From: Felis catus
Lineage: Eukaryota
Direction: 5' to 3'
NCBI RefSeq assembly: GCF_018350175.1
Contig: NC_058380.1
Span: forward strand, 91,512,001 to 91,576,000
DNA length: 64,000 bases
The notes under the pieces were generated by a model. It saw only the letters and a program-made list of their open reading frames with translations, did no database searches and was not told where the DNA came from. Positions 471 through 43,650 of the stretch are shown piece by piece. Each line of letters opens with the position of its first letter. The stretch's first letter is position 1. The position numbers were made by a program, and so were the translations under genes.

Positions 471-1759
471 CGTGGCCTAGCCCTCCAGCCCCCCAGTGCC
501 CACCACCTACCCCCACCCACCCCCCACGCACAGCCTGCACCCCTAAAACTGAATTCTCTCAATCTCCCTTGGAGGCCTTGGCTCCTCGGCCAGGGCTACG
601 GTTGGTTCAGGCTGCTGAATTTTAGGTCTTTTCCCCAACAACCAGTGGGACCAACTCCAGTGGCCGCACGTGGTGGCTAATTGGTCTGAAATATAAGCAG
701 GCGGGGAGCACCGTCCCCAACCAGCTTGCCAGTAGCTTCTGACAGATCTTGGTGCTCACGGACCTCCCGCGCTCTCTGGAGGGAGACACAGACTCCACGT
801 ACGGGGCCACGGTCCCCACGCTGCACCCCTGCGGCCCCACCGAGGCTGGGGAAGACCCGCTGGCCCCGGCCCCTAGCCCTGCTGCTCCGGGCCCCGGTGC
901 CTGCTGCTCTCCCCTCCGGAAAGCAGCACGGGGCACCTCCCCGCCCGCTGACGCGAAGGGCGGCGTGGAATGCAGCCTGCCGCTCCGCCAGGCCGCCTGC
1001 TCCCACGCCCTCACGCTGCGGCGACACCCCCACGGAAGCCGGTTTCCCCAGGGCAAGGATGTCACCAGGGCGGTGGGTTCAGAGCCCGCTGACTCCTCCA
1101 GTGGCTTGTAGTGGACTAGCGGAGGGTGGACGTGTGTCCCCGGTGTGTCCCCGCACCCGGACCTGGGCGTGGCGGCGGGGTCGGGGCCAGGCCCAAAGCC
1201 CAGAGGAGGACTCTGCTCCCACCCGCGCTGTGCCAGCCCTTCGCAGACCTCAGAACCGAACCGCGTGCCTTCCGACGCTTCTCCCAGCTGCTCCGCTGGC
1301 AAGCAGAGGGCCCGGGACAGAGGAGGGCCAGCCAAGGCGGGGGCCCAGGTCCGGGGTCCTGCCCACAGCTGCTGCTCCTCACTGCCACAGCCCAACGACC
1401 GGGCAGCCTCTTTCCTACACCAGCTGGGGAAGCTACTGAAACGGCCTGTTTTTAAAGACCCCGTTTATTGTAAAAGAATTACAGCCGCGCGTAAAGTTTC
1501 AAACACGGCCCAGAGATCGGGGGCACAAGAGCCTTCGGAAAGGCTTTTCCACAGGATTGAAGCACGTCCCCAAACCAGGAACACGGGTGGAGCCCTAGGT
1601 CACTGCTCACAGGTGCGCGCTGCTGTGCACACTGCACTCAAGAGGCAGGACGGGCCCCTCAGCACAAAACTGTCCCTCCCCAGACCACCGATAAGGAAGC
1701 CACGGACTTCTGAGAGGCTGCCAAACTCTTTGATTTCCCGCAGAACGTGGCGGATTCCC

Positions 1760-1765
1760 AATAAA
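1760..1765 (+). terminator. Duplicated copy of the putative UAP1L1 poly(A) signal AATAAA (no UAP1L1 CDS upstream here)
   Basis: Mirror of 41965-41970; lies in the UAP1L1 3' region carried by the left arm. Confidence 0.5.
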
Positions 1766-2249
1766 CGCAAGATGCCGTGATTGATCCCTGGCCTGGCGAG
1801 CGCAGTTTCTGACCGGCACGGGTGCTGGGAACGGCAACCAGGGGTTCCCAGCTCCGTGCATCCAAGAGAGCAAGAGTCCACACGCTGAGCCCGCACCTGC
1901 TCTGGGCGGCCCAGGAGTCCCCTCGAGCTCCCACCCAGCTCTTCGCCAGGGTCTCAGGGAGGCCAGGGACCACCTAGTGAGTCTGACACCCTGGGGCGGA
2001 GGGAGAACCACCCCACCCCGGCTAGGTCTCCCAGGGGTGGGCTCCCGCGCCCTCAGCTGGAGAGCCCGGTGATCCACCCTCCAGATACCACCTTCTCCCT
2101 GCTGTCGGCATGTGCAGGGACGGACGCACGAGGGCACCGCTGGCACTACCGGCAGAGCCCTGTGTGGGGAAAAGACCCGCAGGGGCATCGGGGATGACCC
2201 CCGCTAGGGAAGGGGGGGGGCGGAGAGCAGGAGGCGCTTTCTGGGGCAG

Positions 2250-3450
2250 CTTCAGACAAGCCAGGGAGGCGCACACGCCGGGGAGCCCGCCACACACCCC
2301 TAAGTGCGGCGGCCGGGACTGCGGGAGGCGGCGGGCTCACCCGAGGGGGCCGGCAAGGAGCGGGGACGGCCCTCGGCGCTGCGGGGCTCGCTCCGCCCTG
2401 CCGCGTGTCTACTGAGGGGAAACGCGCGCACAACTCGCCGCGGCGGTCGTCCGCGCGCCCCCAAGCCCATCGGCTCCAAAGAGCGGACACCGACAGCCGC
2501 CCCGCCTCGACTCGGGCTCGCACCGGACCCGCTGTCCTCTCGCTGAGCTGCGGCCCCCACTAGCTCTGGGCCGGGAAGTCCGCCCGGGGCCGGGAGTCGA
2601 GCCCCGGAGCGGGGGCGCGGGGCGCCGGACGTCCTGCCAACACCACGGAGCCGGCCGGTCCCGGGGACGCGGCGCTCAGCCGAGTCCCAGGCTCTGCGCC
2701 GGCGGGCTGCGCGCAGGCGCGGGCGGGCAAGCGCCTCACGGCGCAGGTGCGGCCGTGCGCCGACGCGGCGGGACGTAAACACGCACGCAGAGGGCCACGA
2801 GGGCGGGCGCAGGCGCGGTGGGGAATAGGAGGGCGCGGCGCAGGCGCATTGGCCGCGCGCGCGATGGGCGGGGTGTGGACGGCGCTGCGATGGCTGCCCG
2901 CGGGTGTCGGACCAGCGAAGCCCCCGGCGCCTCTCAGAGCCCGGCCTCCTGACGCCGCCAGTGGGCGGGGTCGCCCGGGCCGCCGCCACCGCTGTCATGT
3001 ATCCGCCGCCGCCGCCGGCGCCACATCGGGACTTCATCTCGGTGACGCTGAGCCTTGGCCAGAGCTACGACGGCAGCAAAAGCTGGCGGCGGCGCTCGTG
3101 CTGGAGGGTGAGGGTCGGCGCCGGGCCGGGGTCCCGCGGCCCGCCCGCCGTCCCCTGCCTGGAGCGCGGGCGCTCGTCCGGGCCCGGGGAGCGGCGGTCG
3201 CCGGCCGCAGGCCGTCTTTACAGCCCGCGCTCGGCGGGGCGGGGTCGGGGAGGGGGGAAGCTGTAGGCTGCCCCTCGGTGCGGTGGGTCAGGAGCCCCGC
3301 GGTCTCGGGCTGCAGGGCATCGACACCCCCACGTCGGGGCAGATGCGGGGTCCCGCCGGCTGCCTGAGACGGAACACGCGCGTCGCGCGAGCCTCTCCCC
3401 GCTGCCCCTGCGATAGGACACGTATGGCTTCTGCGTCTGTTGTTTATTTC
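2250..3450 (+). promoter_or_regulatory. CpG-island promoter of MAN1B1 copy 1
   Basis: Very CpG-dense. Three GCGCAGGCGC NRF1-type motifs (2711-2720, 2807-2816, 2838-2847), a reverse CCAAT (ATTGG 2848-2852) and GC boxes precede exon 1. Limits approximate. Confidence 0.75.
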
Positions 3451-6400
3451 CGTTCCCCTATACCGTCTGGAATATCCCCGCGGCTCGTCAGTCTCTGCCG
3501 CCGGGGCGCTTCCCCCGGTTCAGAAACCGGACCTTGGGAGTTACCCACTGTCCTCCCTGAATTTGCAGCGGTCGCACGGGTCCCAGCTGTGTTGTTTTCC
3601 GTCCCGTAGAAATGGAAGCAGCTGTCGAGACTACAGCGCAACGTGATCCTTTTCTTCCTCACGTTTCTCGTGCTCTGCGGGCTCCTGTCCTACATCAGCG
3701 TGGCTGACCAGTGGAGAGGTACCGGCTGCGCGTGTGCCTCATCCCCATGCGTGTGCGTCACCCACTGCGGGTGGCTGGGCAGAAGCGGTCTGGCCGTGCG
3801 CCTTAAGCGCCTGGAGCGTCTGCGAATTGGCGAGAAGCGCAGACGAAAAGGAGCGGAGAGTGTCTTTCGCCACCCTGCTAGAACGTGGCTCGAGTCAATG
3901 TGATGTTGCCCGCCCGCTTCCTGGGTGTCCGGTGTAAGGGCCGGCCTCTCCGTTCTCTGTGCCTCACGGAGACGTTCGGGTCCTGAGGTCGCGTGCCCCG
4001 TCCAGACACGCTCCCTGAACTTCCTCACACGTGTTACCGTGTGTTCCGAGCGGCCCGGGCAGTCTGGGTGAGGGCGTAGGGAACCCCTGTGGGGGAGGAA
4101 AGCTCAGGAGCTGCTGCGGGCGGCTGGAGACAGCTGCACATAGGCCGGGGTCTGCGCTTCCTGGAAGGGAAGCCGCTGAGGGGAGGTCCGTGTGGGCTGG
4201 GCTGCAGGACAGAAGCTGCCAAGTGCTTTGAGGAAGGTTTGGTTACCCTTGGCCGTTCTTGAGTTGGTTTAAAGGACCTTCCCCAGGTCTCACGGTGTCC
4301 TCTCGTGGTGAGGAGCGCCCGCCTAGACGCGTTCCTCCACGCGCTCGCTCGGGCTCTCCTTGGGGCTGTGCGGCACGTTTGGGATAAAACCTGTTCTCTC
4401 GTTTAGCCGTGGATGGCAGGTCAGCAGAAGAGCGGAAGGCGAGACCAGCAGATCCGCCCGTCTTGCCGGCTCCTCAGAAGGCAGATGCTAATCCAGAAAA
4501 CTCGCCGGGGCTTTTACCCCAGGTGTGTTCAGTGAACTACACGTGGGGTTGCGACCGGGGTCGGTCGGTCCCACGGGCGTTTCAGAACCGCGCGTGATGT
4601 TCCACACGGACGGGGGAAGCAGTTCTTTCCCTTGTTGTTTGTCTGATGTTCGCGCCCTGCGCCCCTTATTCTGAGCCAGTAGGATGACGCTTGGGGCAAG
4701 GAGGAGGAATGTTCTTTCCTCCCTTCCCCTTGGATACCTGCTGGGGAGCGAAACAGACCCGCCCCTTGTCTGGAGGAGCGGCAGGCCGGCGGGAGCAGGC
4801 CGGTGGGTGGCCCGTGGTGTCCATCCCGGGAGGAAAATGGCAGTCGCCTCCAGGGATGAGGCTGGGGACGGGACGCTGGACGGCGGTGTGAGACTGGGCC
4901 GCCGCTGGTCCTGGGTGGAGTCGGGAGAGCAGGGCTCGAGTCCAGTGACGTTGCCCGAGGCAGGGGGAGCTGGGCTTGTTCAGGGAGCTGCAGTTTCAGA
5001 GGGCGTGGGCGTGGGCGGGGAAGGGGGCTGGGGTCGGGCCCCACGGGGAGCGGCCAGGAGGCCTCTCTGCAAACCGTCTTACTCGGAGGCTGTGTGTCAA
5101 ACGGCTCCCGTCCTCCCTCGTGGAGCCGACACGCACGTCTCTCGCTCCTCTTGGCCGCTCTCGTGCACCTGGGCTCTCGTGACGGCGATGGGAGCAGAGC
5201 CCGCCTGCACGGTTGCCCGCCGAAAGACACGCTTCCGTTGCTCGGGAGGCCCGTGATCCCGTCTGGGGTGGCGGCCGGGGTCGGTGTGCACGGCTCCCCG
5301 GGTCCGGGCCTCGGGGCGCGGGGCCCCTTGTGGCGGGGCCGCTGGGACCTTTTCTGCTGCTCGGACTGCGGCACTTGTGCCCCAGGCCTGGGTCAGCCCC
5401 GGTGCTTTGTGTGCGGCCAGATCCCATCCTCTTGGCCGCGGGGGTCCCGGCTCCGTGGCACTGGCGTCTTTCCAACGAGGACCCCTTCACGGGTCCTGTG
5501 GGTACTGAGCGGCAGAGATGTGTTCGATCCCCGAGTCGGCCTCCTTGCTGTGTCCTGCGGAGGAGGGGCCTCCTCCTGCCCTCTGCTGACGACGGGCTAC
5601 GCCTGGGCCCCTGCGCTCCGTCCCTGGACCCGGTGCCCTGGCCACCCGGTTCTGAGCACAAAGGGTGGGAGTCCTGGGGCACAGGCCCGGGACAGTGTTC
5701 TTTGCGCCTCCATCCACGGGGACGTGGCCCTGACCCTTTATTGCTACCTTTAGGGCCTGTGACGGCCCGGAACCCTCCCGGGCCAGGATGCCAACCCACT
5801 GCCCAGGGCCGCGCCGGCCCGTTGGCACAGTCTCCGTCCCGGTTGGTCAGGGCCCGGAGATCGTGAGAAAGGATCTTCTGGCCAAATCTGCGTGTTGCCG
5901 TGGGAGCGGGAAGGCATCTCCTCCGGGGGCCGTGCGCCACCAGCCATTCCACGCGGCCCGTGGGGTTGGGTCTGATAGGGAGAGCATCCCAGGTGGAAAC
6001 GGAGTGGCAGCTCCTGGGCCGTTGAACTGTTTTCACGAGTGGCTCTTGTTTCGATCTAGAAGCCTCAGAGGCATTTCCGACGGGGACCGCCCAACCTGCA
6101 GATTAGAGCCCCCGACAAAGACTCCAAGGACCGGAGGCAGGATGACACGAGGCGGAGGGACGAGGTGGTGGGCGACGCTCGTCAGGAAGAGAGCACGCAG
6201 AGGACGGTGGTCAGGTACAGGGAGCGTCAGAGACGAGGCAGCACGGGTCGCTGGATGCGCAGAGGCCGGTCCGTTTGACGTTTCCTGAAAAACGAAGGGG
6301 TAGGATCGGCGCGCTGTCTGAAGCGGCTTCTCCTCCCAGAGCAGACAGTGGAGAGAGCGGGACCCCGGTGGGGGCGGGGCCCTGCCTTCTCCGCGTCGTG

Positions 6401-9400
6401 CCGCATGGAGCGGAGGGCCGCCACGGGCCCAGCCAGGCTGTGACCGCGGGCGTTTGCATCTCTGCCCTCAAGCCGGCTGACTCCTCTTCCTCCTCTCCCT
6501 GAAGCTGGAGGGGTGCGGTGATCGAGCCGGAGCAGGGCACCGAACCCCCTTCGAGAAAGGCAGAGGGCCCCCCCACCAAGCCTTCCTCACAGGCCGCCGG
6601 GATTCAGAACCAACCAGGTAAGGCCCCGCCTGCGCCCCGTCGGGCCTCGCCCGGACATGGTGACGGAGAGGGCGCGTGGACACCCAGCTGGGCACCCGGG
6701 CGGGCCCCAGCTCTCTGTAGAGCCTTGGGGAGGGCACGGGGCTCCACGGCGGCCCGCGGTCCCAGGCCCGTCGCGGCAGCCACAGGCCGCCTGTGCGGGA
6801 ACTGCCCGCGTCCGTGCCAGCGCGGGGCCTGGGGAGAGTGGAGACACGGCCCCGGCTCGGTGGGGTCCTGGGGTCCTGCGTTCTGGCACCGGTAGTGGAG
6901 GGCCCTCGGGGCACTGGCGCTTTGTACGCTCCGTGCGGCCTGTCTGCTTTGGTTCTCGTGGCGGCCTTTGAGGTCATCGGTCTGTCGTAGGCCCGTTCCA
7001 CGGACGGGAGAGCCGAGGTTAGGCCGGCAGCGGCCACGGCCATTTGCCTCCCGGAGCGGGGGCTCGCGCCGGGTCAGCTGAGCCTGGGGCCCAGGCTGTG
7101 ATCCTCCAGTCCTGTCGCTGTTGCCACTGAGGGGAGGAGGAGGAGGAAGGAGCCCGGAGCCGGGACGGGCGGCCCGGGCGTGTGGGGGGAGGCAGAGCGG
7201 TCGCGGGGCTCTGAGGACCGATGTCAAAGCCGCAGATGCCAACACGACTGGGCCTCAGGCCGCACCGAGAGGACACGTGCCGCGAAGCCGCCGACGCCCA
7301 CGTTTCTGTCCGCCTGGGGGCCCTGTCACTCGTGCCTGGTCCTCCGACGTGTGGAGGGGAGAAACCTTCTCGGTCGGCGTCGAGGCCACCCTGGAAGGGC
7401 CCCAGGGCGGCCTTGGGTGTGTCTGCCACACGCTGTTCCCTCCCCGAAAACACCCAGAGCTGCTGAGGCACGCACGACGTGGGCACCTGTGAGATGAGGC
7501 GCTCTCGTGGAGGTCACCGGAGCCCGCCCGCCACGTCTGATGCTCCCCCGGCCGGATTGCACAGCGCGGCTGCCGTGGCGGAGCGGCAGGCACCGGTCTG
7601 CTGCCTCAAACACCTCCGCCCGCTGCGCGTTCCCCGCAGCTCCAGAGGGTCGTGCCCGCCGGGCGTCTGGTGGAGGCGGACGGGCGCAGGCCAGGCGGAT
7701 GAGAGGCCGAGCCGTCGCGTGTGGACCCTGGAGGCCTCGCCACCTTGGCAGCCGCGTCCAGCCGTGCGGCTCCGAGCCCGGCGGCGCCGCGCCCCGACCT
7801 TCGGGGTCGTCCGCTGCCGCCCTGCGGCCCCGGACGGTGTCCCCCCACCCCACTGAGCGCCCCGCGGCTTGGGGCTGCAGAGGGGCGGTGTCTGAACCCT
7901 GGGCGGTTCCGGTCCCCACGACCCGCCGTCTTCCTCCCAGCCTCCCCGAACGAGCGTCAGAGGGCCGTGATAGACGCCTTCCGCCACGCGTGGACCGGCT
8001 ACCGCAAGTTCGCCTGGGGCCACGACGAGCTGAAACCCGTGTCCAGGTCCTTCAGCGAGTGGTTTGGCCTGGGACTTACGCTGATTGACGCCCTGGACAC
8101 CATGTGGATTTTGGGTCTGAAAAAAGGTACCTGCTCGTCCCCGAGCACGCGGCCAAGTTCCCCCGGTGGAACGCCTGGGCGCGCGAGGGAGCGAGCCGTG
8201 CCCTGGAGGGTGTAGACGCCACTGTTTCCGTCTGAGGAGCTCTCCCTTCCCCTGGGTGGCAGGCAGTCGCTTTGTCCCTTGATGGCAGGCGTCCCGGGGA
8301 CGCTCAGGGCAGTCGCCCCCTCGGCTCCCGGCCGAAGGCCTGGGCTGGCGTCCGGGGGCAGTTCCAGCCCGTGCTCCCGTCCTAGCCGGAAAGGGGCTCC
8401 CTGGTGGGAGGCGGCACGTGATCCGATAAGGCCATCGGCGTCCCGGGTCTCTCCATCACACTCTTCTCAGGCCACGTGGACGGGGTGTGGTTGAGGCTAC
8501 GGGTCTTTGGGTACTTCCGAATCGGTCTCTCGGAGTCCGTTTCCGGTGTTCCGTAGAGGCCAGAGGCTCCCCCTGAGTTACTCACGTGGCCCTTTGTGCC
8601 GTGGCCGTTACCCGTCAGCGTTGGTGCTCACGACGGCACGCTGGCTGCCCGTCCTCCGGGTGCAGGGGGCTCCGCGGTGTGTCCCCTTGCCGTGAGAAGT
8701 GATGGCGAGGCCCCTCGGGAGAGAGAGACACGAGGACACACGTGGCCCCAGAGCCAGCGAGCGGTCACGGGGGCGCCGGGACCTGTAACCTACTGCCGCT
8801 CCCACCCCGTCTCCCGTCGCAGAGTTTGAAGAAGCCCGCAAGTGGGTGTCTAAGAAGCTCCGGTTTCAGAAAGACGTGGACGTCAACCTGTTCGAGAGCA
8901 CGATCCGGATCCTGGGCGGCCTTCTGAGCGCCTACCACCTGTCCGGGGACGACCTCTTCCTGAGGAAGGCCGTGAGTGTCCGGGCGCCGGCGGAGGTTCC
9001 GCGGCTCGAGGGGCCCCCGGGGGGTGGGGGCGGGGGTCTGTTCCGGGACTCCCGTCTCCCCGGTCGTCTGGGTCTCGCTCCCGCGCACGTGCGTGGGAAG
9101 GTCCCCGTCACCGTCGCGACCCGTGGGGAAGTGCTCTCGGGGCTCCTCGGTCTCGCCGCTGTTGAGCGCCGAGGCCACGTGAAGCCAGTGAGGTCCCGTG
9201 TCCACTTACGGGGGTGAGCACGGGTGGCGGGGTGGCGGGGGTGGGGCGGGAGGGTGGGCGTCGTGGAACGGAGCCGAGGCTGCCGTGTGACGGGAAACCT
9301 CGGTCCTCGTCGTGTCGCGTCATCAGGAAGACTTTGGGAATCGGCTGCTGCCTGCGTTCCAGACGCCCTCCAGGATCCCATACTCGGACGTGAACATCGG

Positions 9401-12400
9401 CACCGGAGCCGCCCACCCGCCCCGCTGGACCTCGGACAGCACGGTGGCCGAGGTCACGAGCATTCAGCTGGAGTTCCGAGAGCTCTCCCGCCTCACGGGG
9501 AGTAAGAAGTTTCAGGTACGGGGGGCCGGCCTGCCGGCCGGAGGCGTCACACCAAGCGGAGGCGTGCGTGGACTTGACCCCGGGCCGCGGGACCACCGTC
9601 CTGTGTGCTTTCCGGTCCCTCGTTCCTCGCCTTTCCTCAGCTGCGCGGGCGGGAAGGGCGTCGACCGGGGGCTGAGTCCGAGCGCGGGCCCGTGTCCTTG
9701 GGGTCCCAACTGCCCCCTGCCTCGTGCTGTGGTGGCCCTCGGGGGTGGTCCGTGGCGGGAGCGAGGCAGGGGCCCACGGTCGTGGGTTTCGGCCTCGCTA
9801 GCCCGTCGCTGACGGTCCTCGTGGACCTCGCTCCTGACCCTCGCCCCGACCCCGTTGGCCGGGGTCCCTCTCCTCGTGGGTGAGTCTCCAGCACGCGGCG
9901 GACCCTCTGGACTTGGCGCTCTGCCTCGTCACTCTTCCTGAAAAACCTGAGCTGCGATTTGAACGTCAGGAAGTTTTGCCTCTTGGCTTGAACATCGCGC
10001 CACAGTCCCACGTGGGCAGCGGCTGCCACCGTCTGATTCCAGAACCAGGTCCTCGCCTCAGGAAGTAGGCCAGCGCACCCTAGCGCTCCCACCCGGGCCC
10101 CCTGCCTCGGTGGCCGCAAATCCACTGGTCGTGCGTGGCTTTCTCTGTTTGGAATGCTCGGCGTGAGTGAGGTCCTACGTACGGCGTGGGCCGTCTGTGG
10201 CCGGTTCTGTCGCCACGCGTGACGTCTTCGTCCGCGCTGGAAGCGTCCGGGAGAAGCGCACCCGTGTCGTAGCACGTGTCCGAAGCATCCCTTTTCGTGG
10301 CCCGGCGGTCTGCCATCGTGCGGTCGGACCACGTGCCGTCCGGGCTCTCGTGCGTTGAGGAGCAGCTGGGTTGTTTCCCACGCGGGGGTGGTAAGAGCGG
10401 CGCTCCCGGGAGAAGGTTCCAGGCGCACGCGGGGCTCTGGCTTTTCCGCGGCAGCCCGCGCTTGTCCTCCGGTCTTTCTCGGTAGCCTTCGCGGTGGGCA
10501 CGTGAGGGTGCCTCCTCTGGGCCGTGGATTTTGTCCTGATGACGTGTGGCGTTTTCCAAACGCCCACAGGCCCCGTGTTCATCTCCCGGGTGGAGGTGGG
10601 CGTCCGGGTGCCTGTCTGCTTGTCGGCGGATTAGCGGCTTTCCTGTCGTTGGCTCGTGCTCCGGAAGCTCAGCGTCTCTCCGTTTGCTCTGAGACGCCGG
10701 CCGGGCGCCGTTGCGATGCCGGATCCCTGTAGCTGCTGGAGACCCAAGGGAAATTGAAGCCGCCCCTGCCTCAGAGGACTTTGTAAAAGGGGGCGGGCGT
10801 CCGTGGCGGGTGGAGGCCAGGAAGTCACTCCCCAGGCAGGGTCCCGAGCGCCGTGAGCAAACGCGCACAGGGCCATGGAGCACAGATGCGTGGCGCTACC
10901 CGGGAGGAGCTGAGGTTGGTTGGGTCTCGAAGGATGAACAGGATCGGCGGGCGGGTGTGCCGCGACCGCGGGCCCGGAAGCAGACGCGCCTGCCTTCCCT
11001 CCAGCGAGCGGGAGCAGACGGCCATGCCTGGGCAGGAGGTCCCGGGGACCGCGGCTGTGGCCTTCAGACACGGTCCCCTGCCAGGAAGAGGAGCTCAGCC
11101 CCGTGTTCGGGGCCCTCGGCATCTGCCCGCTCATCGAGGCAGCCGCGTGTGAGGGTGGGGACCTGGTTGCCGCGTGGCCGGGGCCACCCTCAGGAGCCCT
11201 TGCCCGGTGCAGCCGGGCAGGGGAGCGCCGTGGGCCGGGACACCGGCCTCTTCCGTCCTCGTCCTCTTCCGTCCTCCGCTGGGAACGGGCCCGCCTGTCA
11301 CGGAGGAGGGGTGAGCCGACGAGGCCCGCCTTCCTCGGCTGGCCCGAGGTCCGGCAGCCCCGTCCCCCTGGCTCACCCGCACTCTCCCCTTGTGTGTGTG
11401 TGTGTGTGTGTCCCAGGAGGCCGCGGAGGAGGTGACGAGGCGTGTGCACTCCCTGTCGGGGAAGAAGGACGGGCTGGTGCCCATGTTCATCAACACGCAC
11501 AGCGGCCTCTTCACTCACATGGGAGTGTTCACTCTGGGCGCCAGGGCCGACAGCTACTACGAGTACCTGTTGAAGCAGTGGATCCAGGGCGGAAAGAAGG
11601 AGACGCAGTGAGGCCTGTTTCTGCTGCCTCGGGGACGGGGTCCCCGAGGCTCCCCTTGTCCCGAGTTCTCGGTCGGGAGGCAGCGGCCGTGCCGGACCCG
11701 GACTCGGCCCCTCCGCGGGGGATGTGTCTCTTCCCGGCACGGCCTTCGTGCCAGAGAGGACGCCTGGCTGGTCACGGAGGTCCCCGGCCCCTCTGCGCCA
11801 GGCAGGGCCTGGGGTCTGGGCCCGGCCGAGGGGCCCCCGGCTCACCGGCCGAGCTCTCGTCCTCGGGGTTGTGGAGGCGGCTCCGCTTGTCCGCTCCCCA
11901 GCAGAAGGTGGCCGGGGGCCCCTGGGCCTCCCCGCGCTGCCGGGTTGACGCTTCAGACGTGCGCTTTCCCAGACGGCAGTGCCTCGGGGAGCCTCGTCGT
12001 GCGGTCGGGAAAACACAGGTCACTCTAGCGAAGGGACTGGAAATCCTTGAAGTCTCACGCCAGGGGGTGACCACGACCCAGGACCGCTGGGGGTGGGCAG
12101 CTCCAGGAGGCCGACCGCTACGGGCAGAGATCAGGGCATCACGCCTGGGGAGCCGGAGTTCCCCACGCCTGAACGTGGGGACGTTGAGAGAACCCTGGTG
12201 GGCACGTGGGGTCCCGGGTGGTCCACGGGGGCCGGCTGAGAGGGACGACCCTGTTCGGGGGAGCGGCGGGCACAGCCCCGTGTGTGCCCCAGGCCGCCGA
12301 CTGCCACGAGCCTGCATCTCCAGGCTGGCGTGGTGCCACCTGGTGCCACCAGGCCTCTAGGCCGCCAGCGTGGGGATGGCAGCTCGTGGCCACGTGCCCG

Positions 12401-15541: not shown

Positions 15542-15547
15542 CATAAA
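15542..15547 (+). terminator. Putative variant poly(A) signal CATAAA of MAN1B1 copy 1
   Basis: About 690 nt after the stop codon; no AATAAA seen in the 3'UTR. The context resembles my recollection of the human MAN1B1 mRNA end (GATAAAAGTTGATTTGC). Confidence 0.55.
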
Positions 15548-18234: not shown

Positions 18235-18244
18235 AAAGATTTTA

Positions 18245-18335: not shown

Positions 18336-18360
18336 AGTGTATTTTAAATGATTGAAAGAG

Positions 18361-18817: not shown

Positions 18818-18820
18818 TAG

Positions 18821-27453: not shown

Positions 27454-27459
27454 AATAAA
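27454..27459 (+). terminator. DPP7 poly(A) signal AATAAA
   Basis: About 140 nt after the stop, followed by the GT-rich CTGTGTGTGGTCT downstream element. Confidence 0.85.
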
Positions 27460-28183: not shown

Positions 28184-28189
28184 TTTATG
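28184..28189 (-). terminator. Putative variant poly(A) signal CATAAA of MAN1B1 copy 2
   Basis: Followed on the minus strand by the GT-rich GGTGTCTCCCGTGTCTGTG; convergent with the DPP7 3' end about 725 bp away. Confidence 0.55.
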
Positions 28190-31800: not shown

Positions 31801-34800
31801 AGGCCCAGGGGCCCCCGGCCACCTTCTGCTGGGGAGCGGACAAGCGGAGCCGCCTCCACAACCCCGAGGACGAGAGCTCGGCCGGTGAGCCGGGGGCCCC
31901 TCGGCCGGGCCCAGACCCCAGGCCCTGCCTGGCGCAGAGGGGCCGGGGACCTCCGTGACCAGCCAGGCGTCCTCTCTGGCACGAAGGCCGTGCCGGGAAG
32001 AGACACATCCCCCGCGGAGGGGCCGAGTCCGGGTCCGGCACGGCCGCTGCCTCCCGACCGAGAACTCGGGACAAGGGGAGCCTCGGGGACCCCGTCCCCG
32101 AGGCAGCAGAAACAGGCCTCACTGCGTCTCCTTCTTTCCGCCCTGGATCCACTGCTTCAACAGGTACTCGTAGTAGCTGTCGGCCCTGGCGCCCAGAGTG
32201 AACACTCCCATGTGAGTGAAGAGGCCGCTGTGCGTGTTGATGAACATGGGCACCAGCCCGTCCTTCTTCCCCGACAGGGAGTGCACACGCCTCGTCACCT
32301 CCTCCGCGGCCTCCTGGGACACACACACACACACACACAAGGGGAGAGTGCGGGTGAGCCAGGGGGACGGGGCTGCCGGACCTCGGGCCAGCCGAGGAAG
32401 GCGGGCCTCGTCGGCTCACCCCTCCTCCGTGACAGGCGGGCCCGTTCCCAGCGGAGGACGGAAGAGGACGAGGACGGAAGAGGCCGGTGTCCCGGCCCAC
32501 GGCGCTCCCCTGCCCGGCTGCACCGGGCAAGGGCTCCTGAGGGTGGCCCCGGCCACGCGGCAACCAGGTCCCCACCCTCACACGCGGCTGCCTCGATGAG
32601 CGGGCAGATGCCGAGGGCCCCGAACACGGGGCTGAGCTCCTCTTCCTGGCAGGGGACCGTGTCTGAAGGCCACAGCCGCGGTCCCCGGGACCTCCTGCCC
32701 AGGCATGGCCGTCTGCTCCCGCTCGCTGGAGGGAAGGCAGGCGCGTCTGCTTCCGGGCCCGCGGTCGCGGCACACCCGCCCGCCGATCCTGTTCATCCTT
32801 CGAGACCCAACCAACCTCAGCTCCTCCCGGGTAGCGCCACGCATCTGTGCTCCATGGCCCTGTGCGCGTTTGCTCACGGCGCTCGGGACCCTGCCTGGGG
32901 AGTGACTTCCTGGCCTCCACCCGCCACGGACGCCCGCCCCCTTTTACAAAGTCCTCTGAGGCAGGGGCGGCTTCAATTTCCCTTGGGTCTCCAGCAGCTA
33001 CAGGGATCCGGCATCGCAACGGCGCCCGGCCGGCGTCTCAGAGCAAACGGAGAGACGCTGAGCTTCCGGAGCACGAGCCAACGACAGGAAAGCCGCTAAT
33101 CCGCCGACAAGCAGACAGGCACCCGGACGCCCACCTCCACCCGGGAGATGAACACGGGGCCTGTGGGCGTTTGGAAAACGCCACACGTCATCAGGACAAA
33201 ATCCACGGCCCAGAGGAGGCACCCTCACGTGCCCACCGCGAAGGCTACCGAGAAAGACCGGAGGACAAGCGCGGGCTGCCGCGGAAAAGCCAGAGCCCCG
33301 CGTGCGCCTGGAACCTTCTCCCGGGAGCGCCGCTCTTACCACCCCCGCGTGGGAAACAACCCAGCTGCTCCTCAACGCACGAGAGCCCGGACGGCACGTG
33401 GTCCGACCGCACGATGGCAGACCGCCGGGCCACGAAAAGGGATGCTTCGGACACGTGCTACGACACGGGTGCGCTTCTCCCGGACGCTTCCAGCGCGGAC
33501 GAAGACGTCACGCGTGGCGACAGAACCGGCCACAGACGGCCCACGCCGTACGTAGGACCTCACTCACGCCGAGCATTCCAAACAGAGAAAGCCACGCACG
33601 ACCAGTGGATTTGCGGCCACCGAGGCAGGGGGCCCGGGTGGGAGCGCTAGGGTGCGCTGGCCTACTTCCTGAGGCGAGGACCTGGTTCTGGAATCAGACG
33701 GTGGCAGCCGCTGCCCACGTGGGACTGTGGCGCGATGTTCAAGCCAAGAGGCAAAACTTCCTGACGTTCAAATCGCAGCTCAGGTTTTTCAGGAAGAGTG
33801 ACGAGGCAGAGCGCCAAGTCCAGAGGGTCCGCCGCGTGCTGGAGACTCACCCACGAGGAGAGGGACCCCGGCCAACGGGGTCGGGGCGAGGGTCAGGAGC
33901 GAGGTCCACGAGGACCGTCAGCGACGGGCTAGCGAGGCCGAAACCCACGACCGTGGGCCCCTGCCTCGCTCCCGCCACGGACCACCCCCGGGGGCCACCA
34001 CAGCACGAGGCAGGGGGCAGTTGGGACCCCAAGGACACGGGCCCGCGCTCGGACTCAGCCCCCGGTCGACGCCCTTCCCGCCCGCGCAGCTGAGGAAAGG
34101 CGAGGAACGAGGGACCGGAAAGCACACAGGACGGTGGTCCCGCGGCCCGGGGTCAAGTCCACGCACGCCTCCGCTTGGTGTGACGCCTCCGGCCGGCAGG
34201 CCGGCCCCCCGTACCTGAAACTTCTTACTCCCCGTGAGGCGGGAGAGCTCTCGGAACTCCAGCTGAATGCTCGTGACCTCGGCCACCGTGCTGTCCGAGG
34301 TCCAGCGGGGCGGGTGGGCGGCTCCGGTGCCGATGTTCACGTCCGAGTATGGGATCCTGGAGGGCGTCTGGAACGCAGGCAGCAGCCGATTCCCAAAGTC
34401 TTCCTGATGACGCGACACGACGAGGACCGAGGTTTCCCGTCACACGGCAGCCTCGGCTCCGTTCCACGACGCCCACCCTCCCGCCCCACCCCCGCCACCC
34501 CGCCACCCGTGCTCACCCCCGTAAGTGGACACGGGACCTCACTGGCTTCACGTGGCCTCGGCGCTCAACAGCGGCGAGACCGAGGAGCCCCGAGAGCACT
34601 TCCCCACGGGTCGCGACGGTGACGGGGACCTTCCCACGCACGTGCGCGGGAGCGAGACCCAGACGACCGGGGAGACGGGAGTCCCGGAACAGACCCCCGC
34701 CCCCACCCCCCGGGGGCCCCTCGAGCCGCGGAACCTCCGCCGGCGCCCGGACACTCACGGCCTTCCTCAGGAAGAGGTCGTCCCCGGACAGGTGGTAGGC

Positions 34801-37800
34801 GCTCAGAAGGCCGCCCAGGATCCGGATCGTGCTCTCGAACAGGTTGACGTCCACGTCTTTCTGAAACCGGAGCTTCTTAGACACCCACTTGCGGGCTTCT
34901 TCAAACTCTGCGACGGGAGACGGGGTGGGAGCGGCAGTAGGTTACAGGTCCCGGCGCCCCCGTGACCGCTCGCTGGCTCTGGGGCCACGTGTGTCCTCGT
35001 GTCTCTCTCTCCCGAGGGGCCTCGCCATCACTTCTCACGGCAAGGGGACACACCGCGGAGCCCCCTGCACCCGGAGGACGGGCAGCCAGCGTGCCGTCGT
35101 GAGCACCAACGCTGACGGGTAACGGCCACGGCACAAAGGGCCACGTGAGTAACTCAGGGGGAGCCTCTGGCCTCTACGGAACACCGGAAACGGACTCCGA
35201 GAGACCGATTCGGAAGTACCCAAAGACCCGTAGCCTCAACCACACCCCGTCCACGTGGCCTGAGAAGAGTGTGATGGAGAGACCCGGGACGCCGATGGCC
35301 TTATCGGATCACGTGCCGCCTCCCACCAGGGAGCCCCTTTCCGGCTAGGACGGGAGCACGGGCTGGAACTGCCCCCGGACGCCAGCCCAGGCCTTCGGCC
35401 GGGAGCCGAGGGGGCGACTGCCCTGAGCGTCCCCGGGACGCCTGCCATCAAGGGACAAAGCGACTGCCTGCCACCCAGGGGAAGGGAGAGCTCCTCAGAC
35501 GGAAACAGTGGCGTCTACACCCTCCAGGGCACGGCTCGCTCCCTCGCGCGCCCAGGCGTTCCACCGGGGGAACTTGGCCGCGTGCTCGGGGACGAGCAGG
35601 TACCTTTTTTCAGACCCAAAATCCACATGGTGTCCAGGGCGTCAATCAGCGTAAGTCCCAGGCCAAACCACTCGCTGAAGGACCTGGACACGGGTTTCAG
35701 CTCGTCGTGGCCCCAGGCGAACTTGCGGTAGCCGGTCCACGCGTGGCGGAAGGCGTCTATCACGGCCCTCTGACGCTCGTTCGGGGAGGCTGGGAGGAAG
35801 ACGGCGGGTCGTGGGGACCGGAACCGCCCAGGGTTCAGACACCGCCCCTCTGCAGCCCCAAGCCGCGGGGCGCTCAGTGGGGTGGGGGGACACCGTCCGG
35901 GGCCGCAGGGCGGCAGCGGACGACCCCGAAGGTCGGGGCGCGGCGCCGCCGGGCTCGGAGCCGCACGGCTGGACGCGGCTGCCAAGGTGGCGAGGCCTCC
36001 AGGGTCCACACGCGACGGCTCGGCCTCTCATCCGCCTGGCCTGCGCCCGTCCGCCTCCACCAGACGCCCGGCGGGCACGACCCTCTGGAGCTGCGGGGAA
36101 CGCGCAGCGGGCGGAGGTGTTTGAGGCAGCAGACCGGTGCCTGCCGCTCCGCCACGGCAGCCGCGCTGTGCAATCCGGCCGGGGGAGCATCAGACGTGGC
36201 GGGCGGGCTCCGGTGACCTCCACGAGAGCGCCTCATCTCACAGGTGCCCACGTCGTGCGTGCCTCAGCAGCTCTGGGTGTTTTCGGGGAGGGAACAGCGT
36301 GTGGCAGACACACCCAAGGCCGCCCTGGGGCCCTTCCAGGGTGGCCTCGACGCCGACCGAGAAGGTTTCTCCCCTCCACACGTCGGAGGACCAGGCACGA
36401 GTGACAGGGCCCCCAGGCGGACAGAAACGTGGGCGTCGGCGGCTTCGCGGCACGTGTCCTCTCGGTGCGGCCTGAGGCCCAGTCGTGTTGGCATCTGCGG
36501 CTTTGACATCGGTCCTCAGAGCCCCGCGACCGCTCTGCCTCCCCCCACACGCCCGGGCCGCCCGTCCCGGCTCCGGGCTCCTTCCTCCTCCTCCTCCCCT
36601 CAGTGGCAACAGCGACAGGACTGGAGGGTCACAGCCTGGGCCCCAGGCTCAGCTGACCCGGCGCGAGCCCCCGCTCCGGGAGGCAAATGGCCGTGGCCGC
36701 TGCCGGCCTAACCTCGGCTCTCCCGTCCGTGGAACGGGCCTACGACAGACCGATGACCTCAAAGGCCGCCACGAGAACCAAAGCAGACAGGCCGCACGGA
36801 GCGTACAAAGCGCCAGTGCCCCGAGGGCCCTCCACTACCGGTGCCAGAACGCAGGACCCCAGGACCCCACCGAGCCGGGGCCGTGTCTCCACTCTCCCCA
36901 GGCCCCGCGCTGGCACGGACGCGGGCAGTTCCCGCACAGGCGGCCTGTGGCTGCCGCGACGGGCCTGGGACCGCGGGCCGCCGTGGAGCCCCGTGCCCTC
37001 CCCAAGGCTCTACAGAGAGCTGGGGCCCGCCCGGGTGCCCAGCTGGGTGTCCACGCGCCCTCTCCGTCACCATGTCCGGGCGAGGCCCGACGGGGCGCAG
37101 GCGGGGCCTTACCTGGTTGGTTCTGAATCCCGGCGGCCTGTGAGGAAGGCTTGGTGGGGGGGCCCTCTGCCTTTCTCGAAGGGGGTTCGGTGCCCTGCTC
37201 CGGCTCGATCACCGCACCCCTCCAGCTTCAGGGAGAGGAGGAAGAGGAGTCAGCCGGCTTGAGGGCAGAGATGCAAACGCCCGCGGTCACAGCCTGGCTG
37301 GGCCCGTGGCGGCCCTCCGCTCCATGCGGCACGACGCGGAGAAGGCAGGGCCCCGCCCCCACCGGGGTCCCGCTCTCTCCACTGTCTGCTCTGGGAGGAG
37401 AAGCCGCTTCAGACAGCGCGCCGATCCTACCCCTTCGTTTTTCAGGAAACGTCAAACGGACCGGCCTCTGCGCATCCAGCGACCCGTGCTGCCTCGTCTC
37501 TGACGCTCCCTGTACCTGACCACCGTCCTCTGCGTGCTCTCTTCCTGACGAGCGTCGCCCACCACCTCGTCCCTCCGCCTCGTGTCATCCTGCCTCCGGT
37601 CCTTGGAGTCTTTGTCGGGGGCTCTAATCTGCAGGTTGGGCGGTCCCCGTCGGAAATGCCTCTGAGGCTTCTAGATCGAAACAAGAGCCACTCGTGAAAA
37701 CAGTTCAACGGCCCAGGAGCTGCCACTCCGTTTCCACCTGGGATGCTCTCCCTATCAGACCCAACCCCACGGGCCGCGTGGAATGGCTGGTGGCGCACGG

Positions 37801-40733
37801 CCCCCGGAGGAGATGCCTTCCCGCTCCCACGGCAACACGCAGATTTGGCCAGAAGATCCTTTCTCACGATCTCCGGGCCCTGACCAACCGGGACGGAGAC
37901 TGTGCCAACGGGCCGGCGCGGCCCTGGGCAGTGGGTTGGCATCCTGGCCCGGGAGGGTTCCGGGCCGTCACAGGCCCTAAAGGTAGCAATAAAGGGTCAG
38001 GGCCACGTCCCCGTGGATGGAGGCGCAAAGAACACTGTCCCGGGCCTGTGCCCCAGGACTCCCACCCTTTGTGCTCAGAACCGGGTGGCCAGGGCACCGG
38101 GTCCAGGGACGGAGCGCAGGGGCCCAGGCGTAGCCCGTCGTCAGCAGAGGGCAGGAGGAGGCCCCTCCTCCGCAGGACACAGCAAGGAGGCCGACTCGGG
38201 GATCGAACACATCTCTGCCGCTCAGTACCCACAGGACCCGTGAAGGGGTCCTCGTTGGAAAGACGCCAGTGCCACGGAGCCGGGACCCCCGCGGCCAAGA
38301 GGATGGGATCTGGCCGCACACAAAGCACCGGGGCTGACCCAGGCCTGGGGCACAAGTGCCGCAGTCCGAGCAGCAGAAAAGGTCCCAGCGGCCCCGCCAC
38401 AAGGGGCCCCGCGCCCCGAGGCCCGGACCCGGGGAGCCGTGCACACCGACCCCGGCCGCCACCCCAGACGGGATCACGGGCCTCCCGAGCAACGGAAGCG
38501 TGTCTTTCGGCGGGCAACCGTGCAGGCGGGCTCTGCTCCCATCGCCGTCACGAGAGCCCAGGTGCACGAGAGCGGCCAAGAGGAGCGAGAGACGTGCGTG
38601 TCGGCTCCACGAGGGAGGACGGGAGCCGTTTGACACACAGCCTCCGAGTAAGACGGTTTGCAGAGAGGCCTCCTGGCCGCTCCCCGTGGGGCCCGACCCC
38701 AGCCCCCTTCCCCGCCCACGCCCACGCCCTCTGAAACTGCAGCTCCCTGAACAAGCCCAGCTCCCCCTGCCTCGGGCAACGTCACTGGACTCGAGCCCTG
38801 CTCTCCCGACTCCACCCAGGACCAGCGGCGGCCCAGTCTCACACCGCCGTCCAGCGTCCCGTCCCCAGCCTCATCCCTGGAGGCGACTGCCATTTTCCTC
38901 CCGGGATGGACACCACGGGCCACCCACCGGCCTGCTCCCGCCGGCCTGCCGCTCCTCCAGACAAGGGGCGGGTCTGTTTCGCTCCCCAGCAGGTATCCAA
39001 GGGGAAGGGAGGAAAGAACATTCCTCCTCCTTGCCCCAAGCGTCATCCTACTGGCTCAGAATAAGGGGCGCAGGGCGCGAACATCAGACAAACAACAAGG
39101 GAAAGAACTGCTTCCCCCGTCCGTGTGGAACATCACGCGCGGTTCTGAAACGCCCGTGGGACCGACCGACCCCGGTCGCAACCCCACGTGTAGTTCACTG
39201 AACACACCTGGGGTAAAAGCCCCGGCGAGTTTTCTGGATTAGCATCTGCCTTCTGAGGAGCCGGCAAGACGGGCGGATCTGCTGGTCTCGCCTTCCGCTC
39301 TTCTGCTGACCTGCCATCCACGGCTAAACGAGAGAACAGGTTTTATCCCAAACGTGCCGCACAGCCCCAAGGAGAGCCCGAGCGAGCGCGTGGAGGAACG
39401 CGTCTAGGCGGGCGCTCCTCACCACGAGAGGACACCGTGAGACCTGGGGAAGGTCCTTTAAACCAACTCAAGAACGGCCAAGGGTAACCAAACCTTCCTC
39501 AAAGCACTTGGCAGCTTCTGTCCTGCAGCCCAGCCCACACGGACCTCCCCTCAGCGGCTTCCCTTCCAGGAAGCGCAGACCCCGGCCTATGTGCAGCTGT
39601 CTCCAGCCGCCCGCAGCAGCTCCTGAGCTTTCCTCCCCCACAGGGGTTCCCTACGCCCTCACCCAGACTGCCCGGGCCGCTCGGAACACACGGTAACACG
39701 TGTGAGGAAGTTCAGGGAGCGTGTCTGGACGGGGCACGCGACCTCAGGACCCGAACGTCTCCGTGAGGCACAGAGAACGGAGAGGCCGGCCCTTACACCG
39801 GACACCCAGGAAGCGGGCGGGCAACATCACATTGACTCGAGCCACGTTCTAGCAGGGTGGCGAAAGACACTCTCCGCTCCTTTTCGTCTGCGCTTCTCGC
39901 CAATTCGCAGACGCTCCAGGCGCTTAAGGCGCACGGCCAGACCGCTTCTGCCCAGCCACCCGCAGTGGGTGACGCACACGCATGGGGATGAGGCACACGC
40001 GCAGCCGGTACCTCTCCACTGGTCAGCCACGCTGATGTAGGACAGGAGCCCGCAGAGCACGAGAAACGTGAGGAAGAAAAGGATCACGTTGCGCTGTAGT
40101 CTCGACAGCTGCTTCCATTTCTACGGGACGGAAAACAACACAGCTGGGACCCGTGCGACCGCTGCAAATTCAGGGAGGACAGTGGGTAACTCCCAAGGTC
40201 CGGTTTCTGAACCGGGGGAAGCGCCCCGGCGGCAGAGACTGACGAGCCGCGGGGATATTCCAGACGGTATAGGGGAACGGAAATAAACAACAGACGCAGA
40301 AGCCATACGTGTCCTATCGCAGGGGCAGCGGGGAGAGGCTCGCGCGACGCGCGTGTTCCGTCTCAGGCAGCCGGCGGGACCCCGCATCTGCCCCGACGTG
40401 GGGGTGTCGATGCCCTGCAGCCCGAGACCGCGGGGCTCCTGACCCACCGCACCGAGGGGCAGCCTACAGCTTCCCCCCTCCCCGACCCCGCCCCGCCGAG
40501 CGCGGGCTGTAAAGACGGCCTGCGGCCGGCGACCGCCGCTCCCCGGGCCCGGACGAGCGCCCGCGCTCCAGGCAGGGGACGGCGGGCGGGCCGCGGGACC
40601 CCGGCCCGGCGCCGACCCTCACCCTCCAGCACGAGCGCCGCCGCCAGCTTTTGCTGCCGTCGTAGCTCTGGCCAAGGCTCAGCGTCACCGAGATGAAGTC
40701 CCGATGTGGCGCCGGCGGCGGCGGCGGATACAT
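28877..40733 (-). CDS. MAN1B1: ER mannosyl-oligosaccharide 1,2-alpha-mannosidase (GH47), syntenic copy; 13 exons, about 660 aa
   Basis: Exons in transcript order: 40623-40733, 40012-40120, 39208-39323, 37516-37670, 37113-37225, 35604-35789, 34759-34907, 34215-34403, 32123-32313, 31135-31255, 30064-30261, 29791-29922, 28877-29089. Same GH47 motifs as copy 1; no coding difference noticed. Confidence 0.96.
30621..30761. other. N run (141 nt) in MAN1B1 copy 2 intron 10
   Basis: Run of n at the position homologous to 12853-13110. Confidence 0.99.
30762..30866 (+). repeat. Polypurine (GGAGGGGAGA-type) low-complexity tract
   Basis: Almost pure G/A sequence next to the N run. Confidence 0.9.
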
Positions 40734-41480
40734 GACAGCGGTGGCGGCGGCCCGGGCGACCCCGCCCACTGGCGGCGTCAGGAGGCCGGGCTCTGAGAGG
40801 CGCCGGGGGCTTCGCTGGTCCGACACCCGCGGGCAGCCATCGCAGCGCCGTCCACACCCCGCCCATCGCGCGCGCGGCCAATGCGCCTGCGCCGCGCCCT
40901 CCTATTCCCCACCGCGCCTGCGCCCGCCCTCGTGGCCCTCTGCGTGCGTGTTTACGTCCCGCCGCGTCGGCGCACGGCCGCACCTGCGCCGTGAGGCGCT
41001 TGCCCGCCCGCGCCTGCGCGCAGCCCGCCGGCGCAGAGCCTGGGACTCGGCTGAGCGCCGCGTCCCCGGGACCGGCCGGCTCCGTGGTGTTGGCAGGACG
41101 TCCGGCGCCCCGCGCCCCCGCTCCGGGGCTCGACTCCCGGCCCCGGGCGGACTTCCCGGCCCAGAGCTAGTGGGGGCCGCAGCTCAGCGAGAGGACAGCG
41201 GGTCCGGTGCGAGCCCGAGTCGAGGCGGGGCGGCTGTCGGTGTCCGCTCTTTGGAGCCGATGGGCTTGGGGGCGCGCGGACGACCGCCGCGGCGAGTTGT
41301 GCGCGCGTTTCCCCTCAGTAGACACGCGGCAGGGCGGAGCGAGCCCCGCAGCGCCGAGGGCCGTCCCCGCTCCTTGCCGGCCCCCTCGGGTGAGCCCGCC
41401 GCCTCCCGCAGTCCCGGCCGCCGCACTTAGGGGTGTGTGGCGGGCTCCCCGGCGTGTGCGCCTCCCTGGCTTGTCTGAAG
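40280..41480 (-). promoter_or_regulatory. CpG-island promoter of MAN1B1 copy 2
   Basis: Mirror of 2250-3450, with the same NRF1-type motifs, CCAAT and GC boxes. Confidence 0.75.
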
Positions 41481-41964
41481 CTGCCCCAGAAAGCGCCTCC
41501 TGCTCTCCGCCCCCCCCCTTCCCTAGCGGGGGTCATCCCCGATGCCCCTGCGGGTCTTTTCCCCACACAGGGCTCTGCCGGTAGTGCCAGCGGTGCCCTC
41601 GTGCGTCCGTCCCTGCACATGCCGACAGCAGGGAGAAGGTGGTATCTGGAGGGTGGATCACCGGGCTCTCCAGCTGAGGGCGCGGGAGCCCACCCCTGGG
41701 AGACCTAGCCGGGGTGGGGTGGTTCTCCCTCCGCCCCAGGGTGTCAGACTCACTAGGTGGTCCCTGGCCTCCCTGAGACCCTGGCGAAGAGCTGGGTGGG
41801 AGCTCGAGGGGACTCCTGGGCCGCCCAGAGCAGGTGCGGGCTCAGCGTGTGGACTCTTGCTCTCTTGGATGCACGGAGCTGGGAACCCCTGGTTGCCGTT
41901 CCCAGCACCCGTGCCGGTCAGAAACTGCGCTCGCCAGGCCAGGGATCAATCACGGCATCTTGCG

Positions 41965-41970
41965 TTTATT
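41965..41970 (-). terminator. Putative UAP1L1 poly(A) signal AATAAA
   Basis: First canonical minus-strand AATAAA I found downstream of the UAP1L1 stop (about 1.7 kb away). Confidence 0.55.
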
Positions 41971-43650
41971 GGGAATCCGCCACGTTCTGCGGGAAATCAA
42001 AGAGTTTGGCAGCCTCTCAGAAGTCCGTGGCTTCCTTATCGGTGGTCTGGGGAGGGACAGTTTTGTGCTGAGGGGCCCGTCCTGCCTCTTGAGTGCAGTG
42101 TGCACAGCAGCGCGCACCTGTGAGCAGTGACCTAGGGCTCCACCCGTGTTCCTGGTTTGGGGACGTGCTTCAATCCTGTGGAAAAGCCTTTCCGAAGGCT
42201 CTTGTGCCCCCGATCTCTGGGCCGTGTTTGAAACTTTACGCGCGGCTGTAATTCTTTTACAATAAACGGGGTCTTTAAAAACAGGCCGTTTCAGTAGCTT
42301 CCCCAGCTGGTGTAGGAAAGAGGCTGCCCGGTCGTTGGGCTGTGGCAGTGAGGAGCAGCAGCTGTGGGCAGGACCCCGGACCTGGGCCCCCGCCTTGGCT
42401 GGCCCTCCTCTGTCCCGGGCCCTCTGCTTGCCAGCGGAGCAGCTGGGAGAAGCGTCGGAAGGCACGCGGTTCGGTTCTGAGGTCTGCGAAGGGCTGGCAC
42501 AGCGCGGGTGGGAGCAGAGTCCTCCTCTGGGCTTTGGGCCTGGCCCCGACCCCGCCGCCACGCCCAGGTCCGGGTGCGGGGACACACCGGGGACACACGT
42601 CCACCCTCCGCTAGTCCACTACAAGCCACTGGAGGAGTCAGCGGGCTCTGAACCCACCGCCCTGGTGACATCCTTGCCCTGGGGAAACCGGCTTCCGTGG
42701 GGGTGTCGCCGCAGCGTGAGGGCGTGGGAGCAGGCGGCCTGGCGGAGCGGCAGGCTGCATTCCACGCCGCCCTTCGCGTCAGCGGGCGGGGAGGTGCCCC
42801 GTGCTGCTTTCCGGAGGGGAGAGCAGCAGGCACCGGGGCCCGGAGCAGCAGGGCTAGGGGCCGGGGCCAGCGGGTCTTCCCCAGCCTCGGTGGGGCCGCA
42901 GGGGTGCAGCGTGGGGACCGTGGCCCCGTACGTGGAGTCTGTGTCTCCCTCCAGAGAGCGCGGGAGGTCCGTGAGCACCAAGATCTGTCAGAAGCTACTG
43001 GCAAGCTGGTTGGGGACGGTGCTCCCCGCCTGCTTATATTTCAGACCAATTAGCCACCACGTGCGGCCACTGGAGTTGGTCCCACTGGTTGTTGGGGAAA
43101 AGACCTAAAATTCAGCAGCCTGAACCAACCGTGGCCCTGGCCGAGGAGCCAAGGCCTCCAAGGGAGATTGAGAGAATTCAGTTTTAGGGGTGCAGGCTGT
43201 GCGTGGGGGGTGGGTGGGGGTAGGTGGTGGGCACTGGGGGGCTGGAGGGCTAGGCCGTGACCCCCCCCCCCGCCATGCCAGGTACTTAGTCAGCTGCAAG
43301 AGAGGGAGGGAGCAGCACCTTTGGTAGGTCACCCTGGGGGGGACGGACACCGTCCCCTCCTCTCGCCTCGTCCGTCCGTGGGTCTGCAGAAAAGCTGGAG
43401 TGGCCAGTGCTCCCCGCCGGGCGGATCTGCGCGTAGGGCTCGAGGTGCCGCTGTCCTCACGTACGCCTCCGCTCCCTTACAGAGGCAGGCCTGCTGCCCT
43501 CCCCGAGGACGCCGCACCTCTGCCTCTCGCCCAGACCTCACAGCCAGGAGCACGGCCAAAGAGCCCTGTTTGGTCACTTGTGTCCCCGGGAATGATGACG
43601 GGAGCGGCGCCACCCCTCCGGACCCCGGGGTTGGCAGGCCAGAGAGCAAG

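Follow-up and report, generated by a model that had tools for sequence, protein, structure and literature searches.

Two MAN1B1 genes in near-identical inverted arms around DPP7 on cat chromosome D4: a probable old autosomal palindrome kept alike by gene conversion

Does the domestic cat have two MAN1B1 genes, or was a single gene placed twice in its assembly? The question is raised by a stretch of 64,000 nucleotides (nt) of Felis catus chromosome D4 (contig NC_058380.1, positions 91,512,001 to 91,576,000, here called the window), in which a complete MAN1B1 is present on both sides of the gene DPP7, in opposite orientations. MAN1B1, the mannosidase I of the endoplasmic reticulum (ER), determines when misfolded glycoproteins are passed on to degradation; in human it is single-copy. 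We conclude, with a probability of roughly 0.78, that the locus is a real, old autosomal palindrome, the arms of which are kept alike by arm-to-arm gene conversion. The whole gene, from 2.5 kb upstream of the start codon to the poly(A) site, would have been duplicated in inverted orientation around the single-copy DPP7, in an event that dates back at least to the origin of the cat family and probably to that of Carnivora. A continuing exchange of sequence between the arms would then keep them about 99.98% identical, as in the palindromes of sex chromosomes.

An earlier note on this DNA had described 474-15555 as the reverse complement of 28176-43256, and the alignment of the two arms bears this out with 3 mismatches in 14,824 readable bases. 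The alignment consists of two inverted pieces, 474-12852 against 30878-43256 (12,379 nt, 3 mismatches) and 13111-15555 against 28176-30620 (2,445 nt, 0 mismatches), and the differences are found at 597, 7102 and 9739 in the left arm, corresponding to 43133, 36628 and 33991 in the right arm. The homology breaks off within 1-2 bases at both ends, and all four arm junctions are free of gaps. With arms of 15.08 kb, a spacer of 12,620 nt and an identity of at least 99.9% the locus has the form of a palindrome, that is, inverted arms around a unique spacer. The GC content of the arms is 0.69, compared to 0.475 in the repeat-bearing part of the spacer. In all three differences the left arm has T and the right arm has C on the sense strand of MAN1B1, which may be chance with n = 3.

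The right arm lies in the ancestral context, as had been proposed: spacer, DPP7, MAN1B1 and UAP1L1 are contiguous there, and the gene order is the one that identifies MAN1B1 by synteny, with DPP7 on the plus strand at 24-27.5 kb and UAP1L1 on the minus strand at 46.5-47.6 kb. The extra arm had been said to join non-homologous sequence at both ends without gaps. The absence of gaps was found at both ends, but the left outer flank is not foreign to the locus, since positions 1-470 are an inverted copy of 22721-23190.

To what extent is the second gene intact? The exons were compared one at a time with the database protein, which was reached through library searches leading from an exon-bearing piece to a full-length whale protein and from there to felid proteins. 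On the plus strand of the left arm, 13 in-frame stretches correspond to residues 1-660 of the Felis catus RefSeq protein P0155 with zero differences, with the start ATG at 2997 and the stop TGA at 14852. Each arm contains a CpG island, all 13 exons with GT/AG borders and the 3´ untranslated region (UTR). Seven exon-bearing pieces matched the Pfam family PF01532 (Glyco_hydro_47, GH47) and cover positions 1-233 and 278-397 of the profile, with E values of 1e-14 to 3e-37; the rest of the GH47 domain is covered by the exact match to P0155. Among solved structures, human ER mannosidase I (1FO2, 1X9D, 5KIJ; E value 1e-57) comes closest, whereas Golgi mannosidase IA (1NXC, 5KKB) is a far weaker match (E value 4e-9), so that the protein is nearer to ER mannosidase I than to the Golgi mannosidases IA/IB/IC. 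A 555-residue open reading frame (ORF) at 10693-12357 was considered as a carrier of the GH47 domain and was rejected since no GH47 exon lies inside it.

The three arm differences map to a position 2.4 kb upstream of the ATG, to intron 5 and to intron 8. Since all of them are upstream or intronic, both copies encode the same protein. The arm ends 8 nt past the CATAAA hexamer, and thus the duplicated block stops at about the end of the transcript, with introns and promoter kept. Judging from the sequence, both copies are probably expressed, since they have the same CpG-island promoter and the same encoded protein.

Three runs of N are present in the window, one in intron 10 of each copy (Table 1) and a third one (53320-53459) to the right of UAP1L1; they were kept unfilled in all comparisons. 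The 258 N of the left arm correspond in the right arm to 116 readable bases (30762-30877, low complexity of the (GAGGG)n type) plus 141 N, which amounts to 257 and leaves an offset of 1 nt, and the outer flanks of the runs have the same sequence in both arms. Such an unequal masking of the same sequence in the two arms fits a tract that is hard to read better than a mask based on similarity. The possibility that the N runs mask an exon was ruled out. GTGAGC follows the end of exon 10 at 12595, CAG precedes the start of exon 11 at 13470, and from residue 480 to 481 the protein continues over the left run without a break; thus the runs hide no coding sequence and the frame is kept.

The case for a real duplication rests on the public protein records of carnivores. 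Identical MAN1B1 proteins are listed under two separate RefSeq accession series in about ten felid species, which include both subfamilies. In Felis catus itself these are XP_023098867.2 and XP_044899244.1, and for isoform X3 XP_044899242.1 and XP_044899246.1. The accession numbers of the pair are 189 apart in Lynx canadensis and 973 apart in Prionailurus bengalensis, two series are likewise found in Lynx rufus and Neofelis nebulosa, and for Leopardus geoffroyi the isoforms X1-X5 are listed twice in succession (326-330 and 331-336). In Panthera leo, P. pardus and P. tigris one record is named MAN1B1 and the other one carries the addition '-like'. Outside the felids, two series were found in Mustela lutreola, M. 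erminea, Neovison, Lutra, Enhydra, Zalophus, Mirounga, Canis, Vulpes and Nyctereutes, and duplicates occur in every carnivore family whose MAN1B1 records were read for this comparison. DPP7 served as internal control: the carnivore records, gathered by a search with the hyaena protein, form a single accession series without any '-like' name in all cases read. The earlier proposal of a lineage-specific duplication could thus not be upheld, since two MAN1B1 loci are recorded in about ten felids as well as in mustelids, pinnipeds and canids. The pair is already implicit in public annotations in the form of 'MAN1B1-like' genes; a search of the full-text literature for a carnivore MAN1B1 duplication returned no description of it.

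In GenBank, proteins are generally numbered in the order of their genes on a record. For the Iriomote cat, MAN1B1 has the numbers GAB5580283.1 and GAB5580285.1, and DPP7 is GAB5580284.1 between them, all on one contig of 93 Mb. This numbering is consistent with the order MAN1B1-DPP7-MAN1B1 of the window. For puma and jaguarundi a single MAN1B1 record was found, located on small contigs (3.1 and 1.0 Mb, respectively), which is what a fragmented assembly would give if the two near-identical copies were collapsed into one. The recurrent two-locus records together with the gap-free junctions support a real duplication over the scaffold misjoin that the earlier note had set against it, and we regard the duplication as most likely real.

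If the pair is real, what is its age? Without conversion, the arm divergence of 3/14,824 (0.02%) would correspond to 46-101 thousand years. The duplication is much older than this divergence implies, because records of the pair come from both felid subfamilies and from other carnivores as well. The MAN1B1 proteins differ by 0 residues within felid species, but by 1-9 residues between felid species. The paralogues of Lutra and of Mustela erminea are 1-2 residues apart and those of carnivores overall 0-2, whereas cat MAN1B1 is 46-56 residues apart from that of dog or mink. In the maximum-likelihood protein tree the paralogues pair by species, with support values of 100/97 for Lutra and 99/95 for M. 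erminea. Near-identity within species combined with divergence between species is the pattern of concerted evolution, here seen at the protein level. Gene conversion from arm to arm is a known mechanism for inverted repeats with a short spacer, and we infer that it is a better explanation for the near-identity of the arms than a recent origin.

The outer-left flank, termed a', differs in this respect from the arm that it adjoins. Over the 3-nt junction at 470/474 the identity steps from 99.98% down to 98.3% (Fisher p = 1e-10), and the divergence of a' is about 85-fold that of the arms. Such a step is hard to obtain from one recent copying event or from a double placement of the same reads. It fits conversion, because the arms would be homogenised as collinear partners, while a', whose partner sits 5 kb inside the spacer, would not. 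The homology between a' and its partner, segment a, begins at 22721 and thus within the minisatellite 22390-22814. At the junction the far end of the MAN1B1 segment is connected to DNA from upstream of DPP7, as is typical of a template switch or of an intermediate that was tandem or circular. With 1-2.2e-9 substitutions per site per year, the divergence of a' (1.7%) corresponds to about 4-9 million years. A full second DPP7 to the left of the window is unlikely, given that the carnivore DPP7 records form one series; a fragment or a pseudogene may exist there. The GGGACA-type minisatellite, which also occurs at 377-441, holds one of the duplication breakpoints and may form G-quadruplexes.

Several other explanations have to be weighed against an old palindrome with gene conversion. 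The same MAN1B1 sequence, or the one from the other haplotype, might have been placed twice and inverted in the cat assembly. Like the false duplications known from assemblies, the locus consists of near-identical copies close to each other with unreadable stretches inside, located at the same low-complexity spot in both arms, and the outer breakpoint is found by a C11 homopolymer and within a minisatellite, which are typical assembly break sites. False duplications typically abut gaps, however, and are not reproduced across independent assemblies, whereas here no junction contains a gap and two loci are found again in the annotations of about 20 carnivore species, the assemblies of which we take to be independent. 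In addition, DPP7 is single in the same annotations and lies between the MAN1B1 genes in the Iriomote cat, and the divergence of a' argues against a re-use of the same reads. An artefact private to the cat assembly is therefore very unlikely, because the two loci recur across carnivore records in which DPP7 is single. Quite improbable is also a real but very recent duplication in the domestic cat lineage, about 50-100 thousand years ago. The number of differences between the arms would give just this age if conversion is left aside, but the two loci found in Pantherinae, Lynx, Leopardus, Prionailurus and non-felid carnivores as well as the much higher divergence of the adjoining a' speak against it. 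Another possibility would be that MAN1B1 was duplicated recently and independently in many carnivores, at a fragile G/C rich locus and without long-term concerted evolution. The paralogues would then also group by species, and recurrence is further favoured by '-like' names in whales, bats and a rhinoceros and by the ruminant second copy, whose own clade suggests, although it does not establish, a separate event there. We consider this unlikely, since at least 10 independent events on the same whole gene would be needed; one ancient event followed by conversion requires far fewer assumptions.

Some observations weigh against an old palindrome common to carnivores. The support from other species consists of accession numbering and of names given by the sources, not of the DNA layout, so that the shared carnivore origin is built on protein records, which recurrent duplication could have generated too. 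The inverted layout was seen in the cat window alone, and a consistent gene order in one other felid. In Panthera a consecutive accession pair might in principle represent one gene with two transcripts, but the '-like' added to just one of the two names speaks for separate genes. Moreover, the age of a' is below that of Felidae and Carnivora; therefore a' joined later, has undergone occasional conversion, or the age of the pair is overestimated. Within the preferred reading of an old palindrome maintained by conversion, we infer a single origin and the same inverted layout outside the cats. We propose tentatively, and at somewhat below even odds, that a single inverted duplication dates from the carnivoran ancestor or from an earlier time, over 50 million years ago, and that conversion has held the arms at 99.9% identity or more ever since. 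If true, this would be one of the longest-lived autosomal palindromes known, and one containing a housekeeping gene of ER quality control.

Two MAN1B1 genes are also present in ruminants. Here, the proteins are about 8% apart, and in the protein tree the second copy forms its own clade inside the ruminants. Such pairs were found in Ovis ammon polii (P0335/P0338), Rangifer (P0161/P0168), Muntiacus (P0156/P0173) and Bos (P0334/P0341). In the wild sheep the two proteins have the numbers KAI4547636 and KAI4547638, with one gene numbered between them, as in the Iriomote cat. This numbering together with the 8% between the paralogues might mean that the palindrome stems from an early laurasiatherian ancestor and that the copies escaped conversion in ruminants. 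The name 'MAN1B1-like' is furthermore used in whales (Megaptera, Eubalaena, Kogia, Balaenoptera), bats (Molossus, Saccopteryx) and a rhinoceros. These '-like' names outside carnivores are hints of extra copies in further laurasiatherian lineages.

Comparable structures are known from sex chromosomes. The palindromes P1-P8 of the human and ape Y chromosomes and the palindromes of primate X chromosomes are large inverted repeats with a unique spacer, arms of more than 99.9% identity and intact arm genes; they are conserved across species, and their homogenisation within species is attributed to arm-to-arm gene conversion. The cat locus is similar to them with its near-identical inverted arms and intact genes. 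In contrast to them it is autosomal, its arms are small (15 kb) and carry, in place of testis-biased families, a single housekeeping gene with broad expression, and its spacer harbours an unrelated single-copy gene. A small autosomal inverted gene pair is known with human LGALS7/LGALS7B, the near-identical copies of which are located head-to-head or tail-to-tail at a short distance and are kept alike by conversion. As in that pair, one whole gene is present at the cat locus in inverted, near-identical copies at a short distance. Unlike in that pair, the arms run exactly from the 3´ side of the neighbouring gene to the gene's own poly(A) site, and the duplication is seemingly common to a whole mammalian order.

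In the paper on the telomere-to-telomere assembly of the Sumatran tiger (2026), a putative inversion between cat and tiger is reported at the end of D4, which comprises exactly UAP1L1, MAN1B1 and DPP7; lifted-over annotations were used to call it, and a duplication of MAN1B1 is not mentioned (PMC13047762). This inversion may be a flip via the inverted arms, or a single annotation may have been lifted onto the other copy. In either case it may reflect the MAN1B1 palindrome and not a lineage-defining rearrangement. If a second intact and identically regulated MAN1B1 is present across the order, this would mean a standing two-fold difference in gene dose in ER quality control, with a possible effect on dosage, and the locus would be a clean autosomal case of long-term concerted evolution in a palindrome. 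Since short reads fit either copy, neither variant calls nor expression estimates for MAN1B1 can be relied on in cats and dogs, and short-read assemblies probably collapse the pair.

Table 1. Features of the window around the two MAN1B1 copies (positions are those of the window)
Feature	Position	Strand	Remarks
Outer-left flank a'	1-470		inverted copy of 22721-23190, 8 mismatches/470 (98.3%); continues past the left end of the window
CGT at the junction of a' and arm	471-473		matches neither parent
Left (extra) arm	474-15555	+	carries a MAN1B1 copy on the plus strand
CpG island over promoter and exons 1 and 2, left copy	2001-4000	+	GC 0.62-0.79, CpG observed/expected 0.77-1.06
Left MAN1B1 coding region, ATG to TGA, 13 exons	2997-14854	+	match to P0155, GH47 Pfam
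Left in-frame cores, exons 1-5	2997-3107, 3610-3717, 4406-4522, 6060-6212, 6503-6616	+	
Left in-frame cores, exons 6-9	7937-8125, 8822-8971, 9327-9515, 11414-11608	+	
Left in-frame cores, exons 10-13	12476-12595, 13470-13667, 13809-13943, 14642-14851	+	
N run, intron 10 of left copy	12853-13110		258 N, C/T-rich low-complexity tract
CATAAA, sole poly(A)-signal-like hexamer of the MAN1B1 3´ UTR	15542-15547	+	8 nt before the inner end of the arm
Spacer	15556-28175		12,620 nt: AT-richer repeat-bearing part 15556-22389 (GC 0.475), minisatellite, DPP7, 0.7 kb intergenic
G-rich GGGACA-type minisatellite upstream of DPP7	22390-22814	+	periods 14, 27, 120
Segment a, parent or partner of a'	22721-23190		about 0.8 kb upstream of DPP7 exon 1
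DPP7 (dipeptidyl peptidase 2, Peptidase_S28)	23982-27460	+	exon 1 to AATAAA at 27454; single copy
Right arm, ancestral context	28176-43256	-	carries MAN1B1 on the minus strand
Right MAN1B1 coding region, 13 exons	28877-40733	-	mirror coordinates, same protein as left
N run, intron 10 of right copy	30621-30761		141 N
C11 homopolymer	43261-43271		4 nt beyond the outer end of the right arm
UAP1L1 exons (UDPGP domain)	46500-47603	-	right of the palindrome

The DPP7 gene of the window encodes all four of the four Felis catus RefSeq isoforms in full length, and the DPP7 proteins of other felids are covered to 92-97%. Two G homopolymers are located in the DPP7 gene region, at 23664-23676 (13 nt) and 25737-25751 (15 nt). 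For the 3´ exons of UAP1L1, 9 of the 10 ORF pieces from 43.3-46.5 kb were without a match. The L1 tract that the earlier note had placed in the spacer was neither confirmed nor disproved by the 20 ORF pieces of at least 55 residues found between 15.6 and 22.2 kb on both strands, none of which matched a Pfam family.

An interspersed repeat of 176 nt is found in the spacer (18361-18536 and 18820-18995) and to the right of the palindrome (49138-49313 and 61621-61796), with 76-88% identity between copies and inverted copies near 20.7-20.9 kb. At the head of one of these copies (18366-18451) a tRNA-SeC-like fold was predicted by ARAGORN, and the repeat family looks like a tRNA-derived short interspersed element.

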